In this document: in pieces, positions 14,198 through 17,434 of the stretch | Layout of the letters: each line of letters starts with the position of its first letter | Position numbering within the stretch: the stretch's first letter is position 1 | Assembly (NCBI GenBank): GCA_965644495.1 | Contig: CBFFSA010000008.1 | Location: forward strand, 248,001 to 312,000 | Origin: Perkinsela sp. CCAP 1560/9 | Lineage: Eukaryota > Protista > Euglenozoa: Kinetoplastea | Direction: 5' to 3' | Length of the DNA: 64,000 bases | Notes under the pieces: generated by a model | Told to the model about the DNA's origin: nothing | What the model saw: only the letters and a program-made list of their open reading frames with translations | The model's database searches: none | Position numbers and translations under genes: made by a program

Positions 14198-15007
14198 TTT
14201 CTTGATGGTTGTAAATATATTCCGAAAGTATGAACTCTGATTTGTTCGTAAATAATTTAATTCTCCAGTGTATCAAATTATAATCTGATGGTAGTCGTAA
14301 CAATGATAACATCATTGAACACGCACTGTCAATGGGTGATTTAGATTAAAATTAGTAAATGTTTGGTCACATATGATTGCTCTAAAGTTATTTGTATGTA
14401 CACAATGTAGTACACAGATTCTTATCATGAAGACACATATTCTTAGGTACTGTGACCCCCCCCTTTAATATGGACACTTTTTCGGCTTTTGTCCATAATA
14501 AAGGGGGGGGCGATGAAAGGGGTGTGAAAAAAAATTCGGCGCCGCTTCGCGGCACCTTTTTTACTTATAATACGACAAAAAATCAAATTTGTAAAATCCA
14601 TGTCCAGGAGAGAGGGCGAGGAGAGCAGAGGAAGAGGGCGGGGGAGGAGGGCGTCAATGAGGGGTGAAGGGGCACTTCTTCATAAGGGTGAAGGGTACAT
14701 GGAGGATATACATTATTGATGTACACTATAATTAGGAATAAAAAATTAACAACAAGCAAAAAATCATGCATGCTCACATTCAGCTCTATATTCCGTGTAG
14801 CTATAAAGGTTCCATTCAGTTAAATTGTAGATGTTCTAACGTAAAAGTCGAGCCCAAACTTCCTACTCATACAAAGTTTCACACAAATGAACTAAAGGTG
14901 GAAAGAAAGAACTTACGTTCACGACGGGAAAAAACAAGACCAACGTTAAGAGCTCACGTAAAAAAACCCACGTAAACTTATCACAACAAAATTAAATAAC
15001 AGCCCTT

Positions 15008-16600
15008 TTACAATTCAAAAGTATCATCATACGCTACTGACTGATCCCACCCCTCTGTGTCCATGTCCCCGCGGTCATTGTCTGGATGAAGCATTAGTTG
15101 CCCTAAACAATCTTGAGTGTCAATTATTTCCTCATCGTGAAGCTCTTCAGTGAGGGCAGGACGATGAGACAGAGCACCGGGAACGCATGGTCGCCATGTT
15201 TTTGAGATATTTTTGCGTGTGAGCTTGTTCTCCACGGGAACTAAAAAAAGCAAGTTACACAGATTGTTTACCAAATGGAGCCCGCATTCATTCGTCATTG
15301 GTTGCTGTTGCGGCACTGCGGCGTATTTAATCTTCATCTCCGCAGAGAAACCTATCAGCAGACGCATGTGAATCATGATGCTGTTCAGAAAATCAGATCG
15401 AGCAGAGGGACAATATGTTTCGTAACTGGCGAAAACAGTTAGCCCAAACCTCTGGAAATTGACAAGGATAAAATGCCCATTAAAAATTAAAGCCGCGGCT
15501 ATTCGACGAACCGATGTAATATGCTGTTTTGGCTCGCGGCCCAGGCCTAACATCAACTGCGTCTGTCCGGTATTTAGGAACATGAGATGCCTGTCTGCAT
15601 TAGGCAATTCCCGATATACCTCCATTACGTTTTGGCAGAGCTGATCCACCGCGTGCGTGGTAAGACAGCTTTTGGGACGTCGAAATTTTTTCCACGTATC
15701 AACCAGGGTGGGAGGAGTCTCCTCTGTTTCCGGCACAACAATCGGCTCATTTCGTGAAGACTCTATTTGTGGTGAAATTTCCTCACGGACTTTTATCTCA
15801 GCTTTCGCTTTTCTGGTTGGTTCACTTTCGGGATCCTTCTCGCTCCATGGATACTCTGTAGCTGGTTGCTTGATGTACCTGCGGGCGGCGTTAAGAATAG
15901 TGTTGTGATGCTTTACCCATACTCTCGAATGGGCCTCTTTTATCCACTCCAGCACCAAATAACGAGTTACCTTACACGAAGAGTTCTGTATTCGCCATGC
16001 ACTGAGCAATTCATTGTACGCCCTCTTAAATAGGCGATTGAATACTCGGTCGTGAATTTGGATCGCTTTCGTGCACCCGCCAGGAATTGTGTGCGGGTCA
16101 CAGTTGACGGGAATATCATCAGTGCGATGCCCCGTGAAGTCGTCAGTAACGATGGCCGTTGAAGATTGTTCCAGGGTAAGTGGCAAGTATCGGTGCATCA
16201 TGCGGGGATATATATCATCTCGCACCCATCCAGAAGAGCTCACATCAATAAATATCCCTTTCAATTTATTCGCGTAACTCGTCATTTCCGAATAAATTGT
16301 TGAGCTTTCTCTGCGCTTCGCTCCGTGCTCAAAAATTACAGTCGGGTGGAGCGGGTAAACTTCGCCGGCCCCTAAATCATAGACGCCCGCAAGAAATGCG
16401 GTTACTGTTTCCTTTGGGTTTGTATCCACTACCTTAGGTTGCGGGCACCCTACCGGAGCAAGTGTGTACCCTTGCACCTCTCCATTGACAAACATGGCGG
16501 TTTCATCCCCGAAAAGCGCGAAACGGTAGCAACGGACTGTGTTTTGAACGTAGAGCTTTTCAGCCCAATGAGAAATTCTGAGGTTCACATCAGCGGGGGC
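15008..16600 (-). CDS. Transposase C-terminal part: DDE_1 (DD30D) catalytic domain fused to a Ulp1/C48-like protease; +1 frame relative to the N-terminal part
   Basis: Transposase motifs FGDETAM, SSGW, IVTDDFTGH, PGGCTKAIQIHDRVFNRLFK; then protease-like motifs FLNT, NGHFILV, VPQQQPMTNECGLHLV. Confidence 0.85.
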   Translation of the reverse strand, partial: APADVNLRISHWAEKLYVQNTVRCYRFALFGDETAMFVNGEVQGYTLAPVGCPQPKVVDTNPKETVTAFLAGVYDLGAGEVYPLHPTVIFEHGAKRRESSTIYSEMTSYANKLKGIFIDVSSSGWVRDDIYPRMMHRYLPLTLEQSSTAIVTDDFTGHRTDDIPVNCDPHTIPGGCTKAIQIHDRVFNRLFKRAYNELLSAWRIQNSSCKVTRYLVLEWIKEAHSRVWVKHHNTILNAARRYIKQPATEYPWSEKDPESEPTRKAKAEIKVREEISPQIESSRNEPIVVPETEETPPTLVDTWKKFRRPKSCLTTHAVDQLCQNVMEVYRELPNADRHLMFLNTGQTQLMLGLGREPKQHITSVRRIAAALIFNGHFILVNFQRFGLTVFASYETYCPSARSDFLNSIMIHMRLLIGFSAEMKIKYAAVPQQQPMTNECGLHLVNNLCNLLFLVPVENKLTRKNISKTWRPCVPGALSHRPALTEELHDEEIIDTQDCLGQLMLHPDNDRGDMDTEGWDQSVAYDDTFEL

Positions 16601-17174
16601 TAAGCACTGTATTCTGCCCCACCGCCGCCACACCCAAACCATAGTACCGTCTGAACTTCGCATAAGTGTCTTCCAAAGCACTAATTGAAGTCAATCCCGT
16701 ATTTTGTCGTATCATGTCGATGACGATATTTCTGGTGAGGGGACACCATAACGAGGAGGCTTGAACGCAGGAGCGGTGTACCCGTTCCATTGCCTCAGAC
16801 TTATTGTAGCAAACTGCTTCGGGATCATTGTAGTCGCCTCCTCGAACGTTAAAAGCACGATTCCTGTGGTTGCTCCCCATGGAACGATCAATGAGTTTTT
16901 GAAAGTAGCTCATACCGTGGCTACGGATTTCATATACTCCGCTTCGCGAAATTCCGTATTTTTCTCGGATTCTTTTTACCGAGAGAGTCGATCGGCAGAT
17001 TTCGCGCTTCTCGTATATATTAAGCTCAGTTCGTCCCCTTTTCTCCTTTACGTGGATATCTAAAGAAGCGTGGACATTGCGCTCATTTGTAATCAACATT
17101 GTTGGATTACCTACCTGTGGCTTTGGGGGTGTTGCCTTAATCCAAGAGGTTAAGGGTCCTTCCACGGAATTCAT
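16590..17174 (-). CDS. Transposase N-terminal part (CENP-B/psq-like HTH DNA-binding domains)
   Basis: RTELNIYEKREIC...SVKRIREKYGISRSGVYEI and PLTRNIV...YAKFRRYYGL resemble the two pogo/CENP-B HTH domains. Confidence 0.8.
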   Translation of the reverse strand: MNSVEGPLTSWIKATPPKPQVGNPTMLITNERNVHASLDIHVKEKRGRTELNIYEKREICRSTLSVKRIREKYGISRSGVYEIRSHGMSYFQKLIDRSMGSNHRNRAFNVRGGDYNDPEAVCYNKSEAMERVHRSCVQASSLWCPLTRNIVIDMIRQNTGLTSISALEDTYAKFRRYYGLGVAAVGQNTVLSPR

Positions 17175-17434
17175 TAGGTTGAAAAATGACTGAAATATAT
17201 GAACATGACGAACTATGTGAAAGCTGATAAAATTACCTAGCTACAGATACCCTAAAAAACAGAAAAAAAGAGACAAAAAAAAGGGTACGTCAAAAAAAAA
17301 AATTGGCGCCGCTGCGCGGCGCACGGTCGGATTTGTCCACAATAAAGGGGGGGGATACCCCCTGTCCATATTAAAGGGGGGGGTCACAGTATATTTTTAG
17401 GCCCGCTCGGCATGCAGTTCTAATTTGAAATCTA

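Follow-up and report, generated by a model that had tools for sequence, protein, structure and literature searches.

The stretch of DNA analysed here, called the window below, comprises 64,000 nucleotides of contig CBFFSA010000008.1 (assembly GCA_965644495.1) from Perkinsela sp. CCAP 1560/9. At positions 14450-17389 it carries a DNA transposon of 2,940 bp with affinities to the pogo superfamily. The inverted arms of this element (14448-14476 and 17363-17391) pair without a mismatch over 29 nt (100% complementarity) and are made up of 27-nt terminal inverted repeats (TIRs) with a TA on each side. Between the arms lie two overlapping open reading frames (ORFs), both on the minus strand, which correspond to an N-terminal DNA-binding part and to a DDE nuclease followed by a domain similar to Ulp1-type cysteine proteases. 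In related copies elsewhere in the genome, the same parts are encoded by one uninterrupted frame. An initial annotation, made from the letters of the window, had proposed a young pogo-like transposon with a transposase-protease fusion in a kinetoplastid-type genome.

Copies of the element, insertion polymorphism and transposase

The initial annotation suggested counting the copies of the element across the genome and looking for sites without it, and both approaches were productive. The 21-Mb assembly contains 81 DNA matches and 85 protein matches to the element, deletion derivatives among them. Both ends are kept in six copies, each of them bordered by TA on either side and set in flanking sequence unrelated to that of the others, which bears out the perfect 27-bp TIRs and the TA duplications first noticed in the window. 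The element is not a contaminant, since it is spread over many contigs.

The insertion polymorphism is shown directly by empty-site contigs. In contigs of the public runs X1 and X2 of the same organism, an empty-site joint (14446->17389) skips 2,942 bases, i.e., the element together with one TA. An empty site with a single TA fits a pre-insertion allele without a footprint. The depth of the empty-site contig in run X2 is 46.7 versus 92-97 in the flanks; because this is about half of the flank depth, filled and empty alleles coexist in this run.

Three derivatives of 2.4 kb (C3:1286k, C1:2347k and C1:1633k; L003:806-3204, L004:1503-3901 and L005:1503-3900 on the extracted loci) occupy different TA sites and are 100% identical to each other over 2,398-2,399 bp. 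Their identity to the window copy is 99.67%, and the segment corresponding to 15149-15684, nearly the whole protease, is missing from all three. Their reading frame is correct and encodes an uninterrupted protein of 496 aa, which comprises the DNA-binding part and the full catalytic triad and ends just as the protease region begins. The most recent burst was that of the protease-less form, and the window copy is the sole full-length member of its subfamily. With the empty site in two runs and the three identical sister copies, the window element is recently inserted and still polymorphic, and its youth, at first deduced from the identical TIRs, is now documented independently.

The left flank of one derivative (L004:28-1521) contains an ORF of 497 aa with a reverse-transcriptase-like FIDD motif, which extends to the insertion point; this derivative probably landed in a retroelement. 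Several pairs of end matches are only 1.0-1.3 kb apart at 77-94% identity (C4:342953-344258, C18:143435-144628, C13:344941-345953 and C9:528361-529377). These are possibly short non-autonomous relatives similar to miniature inverted-repeat transposable elements.

Sister copies about 56% identical to the window element have a single uninterrupted ORF, of 742 aa in L036 and 771 aa in L037 (727 aa from the conserved Met). The sister element L037:979-3903 (G000:C11) possesses perfect ends of 26-28 nt, TA flanks and one ORF with the DNA-binding, nuclease and protease parts; its ends match those of the window copy at 26 of 27 positions. Among the copies in the genome, this element is the strongest candidate for autonomy.

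The ORFs of L036 and L037 match Pfam DDE_1 (PF03184) at 31 and 29 bits, respectively, against a cut-off of 22, and DDE_1 is matched in 8 of the 17 aligned family members. The domain calls were based on sister copies, profiles and predicted folds, and not on the window ORFs alone. Profile searches with DDE_1, HTH_Tnp_Tc5 and Peptidase_C48, which the initial annotation recommended, thus had a mixed outcome: the sister ORFs pass DDE_1, but the window ORFs gave no match, HTH_Tnp_Tc5 was not found, and the C48 matches of the genome copies stayed below threshold.

The catalytic triad is formed by D59, D180 and D211 of ORF2. FGDET begins at residue 57, TDDFTGH at 179 and QIHD at 208, with 30 residues between the last two aspartates, which agrees with the DD30D triad described earlier; the sister L037 has the same spacing. 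The AlphaFold model of the L037 protein (mean predicted local distance difference test, pLDDT, of 63.5; domains 70-90) consists of two three-helix bundles (58-91 and 130-183), an RNase-H-like core (222-443), a disordered segment (445-496) and a compact C-terminal domain (495-660). A Foldseek search with this full-length model retrieved Ulp1/SENP structures and also the Mos1 mariner transposase, the latter aligned over about 410 columns with E values of 4e-4 to 1e-3. Searching PDB sequences with the sister ORF by phmmer gave only chance matches to Pizza proteins. For the CENP-B-like helix-turn-helix motifs of the initial annotation the picture is mixed: the two bundles are present in the sister's model, but CENP-B_N is matched only weakly in relatives (E 0.002 in P0019 and 0.34 in L041) and there is no HTH_Tnp_Tc5 match, so that the CENP-B-type label of the DNA-binding part is weakly supported. 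Assignment of the element to the pogo superfamily (IS630-Tc1-mariner) as a TA-inserting transposon of the DDE_1 type is supported.

The window copy itself is damaged. On the sense strand at about 16636, all other copies read GGTTGGG, while the window reads GGTTTGGG. The extra T is a +1 frameshift, and because of it the coding region is split into two ORFs; the split is present in the assembly and is not an annotation gap. In addition, the codon of the expected catalytic Asp is GAC in all other copies and GCC in the window. Neither the frameshift nor the Asp-to-Ala change occurs in any other copy. As assembled, this copy is unable to make the fusion protein and is not autonomous. The fusion claimed in the initial annotation is therefore intact in the sister copies but broken in the copy from which it was described.

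An alternative is that neither lesion is real: both would stem from the assembly, and the window would then contain an autonomous element encoding the whole fusion. Three T against two T is a difference in homopolymer length, typical of long-read error; the extra base at 16636 is absent from the contigs of X1 and X2, and the contigs of all three DNA runs have Asp at 15429. On the other side, the X3 contig over 16193-16770 matches the window without a gap, so the three-T form exists in the reads. The missing Ala codon proves nothing, as read-derived contigs merge several copies and lose minority variants, and the window copy bears other private substitutions besides (14847, 14993, 15360 and 16010). 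This explanation is considered unlikely.

The C-terminal protease-like domain

The protease-like domain of the window copy contains the motifs NGHFIL (with His403), PQQQP and NECG (with Cys466), and the expected Asp reads Ala418. Across 15 aligned genomic paralogs, the motifs HF.LV, fDSY, QQ and NECG follow one another in this order. When outside proteins and the canonical Ulp of the host were included (13 sequences), His, Ser, Gln and Cys were invariant and Asp was present in 12 of the 13; the catalytic His-Asp-Gln-Cys set is complete in these 12, and the window copy is the one without Asp.

The AlphaFold2 model of the window's own domain has a core pLDDT of about 90, and the top 50 Foldseek matches of this model all belong to clan CE. 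In structural comparison by VIA-align, the highest Z values were obtained with NEDP1/Den1 (14.8-14.6; root-mean-square deviation of 3.3 with 169 aligned residues at 14.8), followed by SENP3/5 (about 14) and Ulp1 (13.6), the whole NEDP1/SENP/Ulp1 group ranging from 14.8 to 12.5. Other clan CE families reached 8.8-10.7: bacterial effectors about 10, adenain 9.1, pS273R of African swine fever virus 8.9 and poxvirus I7L 8.8. Language-model features placed 28 of the 30 nearest clusters in C48, and a shape search of the ESM Atlas returned C48 clusters too. The profile built from the paralogs, run against 1.84 billion representatives, retrieved 70 proteins only, several of which pass Pfam Peptidase_C48; outside relatives found by the family profile pass PF02902 at 23-37.6 bits. 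The structure prediction of the C-terminus proposed in the initial annotation thus yielded a clan CE fold, and its assignment to clan CE (C48) agrees with the fold and with the aligned catalytic residues, the Asp position of the window copy reading Ala. The C-terminal domain is, as modelled, a protease fold of the C48 type of clan CE.

The genome-wide search with PF02902 found only the host's own canonical Ulp/SENP gene (L076:1027-2070, 347 aa, 92.8 bits). Sequence similarity of the element's domain to both PF02902 and the host Ulp is low, for which reason the domain is regarded as an old divergent lineage. The comparison of its profile with PDB sequences gave no match. Recent capture of the host Ulp gene was considered and rejected, since the profile aligns with the host Ulp at an E of only 0.63.

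Between subfamilies, the proportion of synonymous differences is saturated (0.83-0.90), and that of non-synonymous differences amounts to 0.23 for the nuclease and 0.34 for the protease. In the closer pair L036/L065, the dN/dS ratio of the protease is 0.15. Judged from these substitution patterns, the protease is kept by purifying selection.

These data bear on the possibility that the domain is non-catalytic, whether as a passenger in decay or as a module for binding ubiquitin-like proteins. The form that was amplified last is entirely without the domain, the window copy has lost the catalytic Asp, and similarity to canonical Ulp is very low, all of which would suit a non-catalytic domain. 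It is difficult to reconcile with the invariance of His, Gln and Cys and the presence of Asp in every other sequence, across subfamilies 23-55% identical and outside relatives, with non-synonymous change in the protease far below synonymous change, and with intact full-length fusions in at least four lineages. A non-catalytic domain is held to be improbable to about the same degree as a double assembly error.

Still less probable is that the protease frees the transposase by self-processing, in the manner of the clan CE proteases of adenovirus, African swine fever virus and poxviruses, which cut polyproteins after Gly-Gly. Viral processing proteases do belong to clan CE and occur in the fold list at Z values of 8.8-9.1, and a long disordered linker separates the nuclease and protease halves. 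However, the best folds, by a clear margin, are those of enzymes deconjugating ubiquitin-like proteins; no conserved Gly-Gly was seen in the linker, the sole conserved GG lying inside the nuclease motif IPGGCT; and the protease domain takes varied positions on unrelated transposon proteins.

Domestication is frequent among pogo transposases (PMC7386202), but a host gene or domesticated transposase lying by chance between repeats is refuted by the perfect TIRs and TA duplications at six different sites, by the same site being empty in other samples and by more than 80 DNA matches in the genome, deletion derivatives included.

The protease is followed by an acidic tail (window 15011-15115, minus strand), in which a hydrophobic stretch precedes acidic residues and a G-W-E/D motif; this layout is kept across subfamilies. 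It might be speculated that the tail resembles a SUMO-interaction motif. A SUMO candidate of the host was found at L078:1312-1740; it is 142 aa long and ends in QIGG plus a four-residue tail.

Host genome, layout and proposed working of the element

The host genome is supported as kinetoplastid-type, as had been stated initially. The 30 long ORFs of the window are all on the minus strand except two shadow frames, and the transposase is on the same strand. A kinetoplastid-like 19-mer from the 3' part of the spliced leader has five matches, each with one mismatch, versus none for the reversed control. These are dispersed and all on the forward strand (C3:214246, C5:790775, C9:532533, C12:255060 and C21:14576). 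The four best PDB matches of the RPS15a are ribosome chains, which we take to be those of Leishmania and Trypanosoma, with Euglena next.

The features of the element are collected in Table 1. The Rfam search of the window gave no match. The GC-rich palindrome with its A/T run is also present at 2625-2655, near the contig end, in contig L071 of an outside relative with a protein identity of no more than 34%. The palindrome beside the A/T run may be a conserved binding or processing signal.

Table 1. Positions of the element's features in the window; strand is given for coding features and for the acceptor candidate
Feature	Position	Strand	Basis or remark
Left TA target-site duplication	14448-14449		Single TA kept in the empty allele of runs X1 and X2
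Left TIR, 27 nt, 3' end relative to the transposase gene	14450-14476		100% complementary to 17363-17389; five other copies have the same sequence
Subterminal copy of the TIR core, inverted versus left TIR	14490-14510		95% over 21 nt; candidate second transposase-binding site
GC-rich palindrome adjoining A/T run	14538-14556		Read from sequence; counterpart at 17305-17322
ORF2, 557 aa: DDE nuclease core, acidic disordered linker, Ulp1-like protease, acidic tail	15008-16681	-	56% identical to intact sister ORFs passing DDE_1
Clan CE/C48 protease-like domain, ORF2 residues ~335-505: His403 (15473-15475), Gln458/459, Cys466 (15284-15286)	15167-15679	-	Model, Foldseek, VIA, alignment with host Ulp
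Ala418 codon GCC at the catalytic Asp position	15428-15430	-	GAC in all other copies
DDE triad region: D59 in FGDET (16499-16513), D180 in TDDFTGH (16127-16147), D211 in QIHD (16049-16060)	16049-16513	-	Spacing DD30D
ORF1, 194 aa, N-terminal DNA-binding part	16590-17174	-	Two three-helix bundles in sister's model; weak CENP-B_N and HTH matches in relatives
Frameshift site, three T versus two T in every other copy	16634-16638	-	Separates the DNA-binding part from the nuclease
Polypyrimidine tract of ~50 nt ending in AG, ~78 nt upstream of ATG	17252-17302	-	Candidate trans-splice acceptor carried by the element
GC-rich palindrome adjoining A/T run, right-hand counterpart of 14538-14556	17305-17322		Read from sequence
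Subterminal copy of the TIR core, direct versus right TIR	17334-17354		90% over 21 nt
Right TIR, 27 nt	17363-17389		Inverted-repeat pairing with left TIR
Right TA target-site duplication	17390-17391		Sequence, other TA-flanked copies, empty allele

The family product is one protein with a two-part helix-turn-helix region, a DD30D nuclease of the DDE_1 type, a disordered acidic linker of about 50 aa and a C-terminal cysteine protease similar to Ulp1, SENP and NEDP1. The window copy could very probably move only with transposase supplied in trans. The source might be the 496-aa protease-less transposase of the three identical derivatives or the intact 727-aa fusion of the sister family L037.

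A pyrimidine tract that ends in AG upstream of the ATG is what kinetoplastid trans-splice acceptors typically look like. Expression of the element would probably proceed by read-through of the gene array and trans-splicing at its own polypyrimidine-AG site. The strand of the transposase is that of the longest flanking ORFs in six of the six TA-flanked copies (L001, L002, L003, L004, L005 and L007), a crude comparison with flanks of about 1.5 kb. The agreement suggests that only insertions oriented along the gene arrays are retained or functional.

As to the protease, it may act as an accessory isopeptidase, stripping SUMO, NEDD8 or a related tag either off the transposase or off chromatin or repair factors of the host; this role is proposed tentatively, the case for it being nearly balanced. 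Its activity would raise the success of the element and would not be required for cutting and joining. Because the most recent burst is of the protease-less form, the protease is not needed in cis. The pattern of copies fits an accessory function, one that would stand apart from the DNA-cutting chemistry.

Taken as a whole, the favoured reading is that the window contains a recent, polymorphic insertion of the pogo type, that this copy is broken, and that its family encodes a transposase-protease fusion in which the protease is accessory. It is regarded as the probable one, with appreciable room for doubt, and several points weigh against it. The window ORFs alone have no relevant match above any Pfam threshold. 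None of the genome copies reaches the PF02902 cut-off (best E 0.0034, with sub-threshold matches in 4 of 15), and the alignment of the protease profile with the host Ulp, in which the right motif is aligned, is not significant. The extra T is found in one of the three runs and the Ala codon in none, the contigs of X1-X3 all showing the Asp version, and either change could be an assembly error. A run guessed to be RNA covers the flanking genes and not the element, which settles nothing. Amplification of the protease-less form fits a dispensable relic equally well, and the enzymatic role of the protease is inferred.

Relatives and comparison with known systems

Proteins of the same two-enzyme architecture, combining DDE_1 and Peptidase_C48, occur in other organisms at 19-34% identity (an ESM Atlas cluster and, from assemblies in the Sequence Read Archive, SRA, the proteins P0067, P0030 and P0009). 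P0009 (784 aa) and the sister protein can be aligned colinearly along 660 aa, with 34% identity, and the GC-rich palindrome recurs near the end of the P0009 contig. P0067 (715 aa) matches DDE_1 at 49.6 bits and Peptidase_C48 at 23.0 bits; the element encoding it measures 2.6 kb and has TIRs of 35 nt between TA flanks. The nearest ESM Atlas cluster contains 64 proteins, mostly of Basidiomycota, 69% of them with DDE_1 and 53% with Peptidase_C48; the link to this cluster is a feature score of 0.91 and not an alignment. Word-indexed protein searches returned only proteins of an ENA assembly that is apparently of the same organism. On these sequence matches, the pogo and Ulp1 layout is not unique to this organism. 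In the literature searched for pogo, Tigger, DDE_1 or Merlin transposases with a Ulp1, C48 or SUMO protease, no description of a pogo and Ulp1 architecture was found. The suggestion of a possibly undescribed pogo lineage is in this way narrowed: no describing paper was found, but the architecture recurs in public fungal sets and SRA assemblies.

The protease profile also matches other fusions: transposases of the Merlin/IS1595 type (P0025, P0048, P0058 and P0069), tyrosine recombinases (P0032, P0034 and P0062), reverse transcriptases (P0037 and P0043) and a Helitron helicase (P0064). This protease subtype seems to be tied to mobile elements of many classes. Its presence on five transposon classes points to a general benefit independent of the mechanism of transposition. 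It is conceivable, though rather doubtful, that the Ulp1-like domain forms a distinct clade of mobile-element proteases, acquired in separate events by pogo, Merlin, tyrosine-recombinase, reverse-transcriptase and Helitron elements, and serves as a general counter-defence that strips SUMO-type marks from host silencing or repair factors. If this were true, the role would be directly testable in natural full-length, protease-less and protease-only copies. The genome offers such a natural series, with an intact fusion, an intact protease-less transposase and copies that have the protease without the nuclease, by which the contribution of the protease could be measured. To our knowledge, the function of the Ulp1 cargo in Mutator and Ginger elements has never been settled.

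The element shares with the pogo superfamily (Tigger, pogoR, Passer, Lemi, Mover and Fot/Fot-like; PMC7386202) the TA duplication, short TIRs, DDE_1 with Asp as the third residue and an N-terminal DNA-binding region, which has two parts in the sister's model. Its spacing of 30 is inside the pogo range of DD29-56D (PMC7386202). It differs by the C-terminal Ulp1-like protease. In the same survey, the word protease is absent, extra domains are reported only in domesticated genes, the host list includes no kinetoplastid, and no excavate or kinetoplastid names were found in the supplementary tables (PMC7386202).

The Ulp1-carrying Mutator-like elements and Ginger1 are similar to the element in combining a DDE transposase with a Ulp1-type C48 domain, either as a fusion or as cargo alongside it, and this domain was proposed to act in the SUMO/ubiquitin pathway during transposition (PMC2836005). 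The Mutator elements and the Gypsy-integrase-like Ginger differ from the element in transposase superfamily, in duplication lengths and in hosts, which are plants, hydra and lancelet.

In trypanosomatids, a 2025 survey of 57 genomes reported no class II elements and only retroelements (PMC12278014). For kinetoplastids as a whole, published surveys list only remnants of Merlin, which was presented as the first DNA transposon of the group when described from Bodo saltans and Perkinsela (PMC8101967). A pogo-type family that has multiple copies, some of them identical, and a site at which the empty allele still segregates would give kinetoplastids their clearest example to date of a live cut-and-paste transposon, and such an element could supply genetic tools for the group. 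Both Merlin and the element described here are DNA transposons of kinetoplastids; Merlin is of the IS1595 type, has few copies and was judged inactive or unclear (PMC8101967), whereas the present element is of the pogo type and occurs in multiple copies, some of them identical, and has an empty allele.

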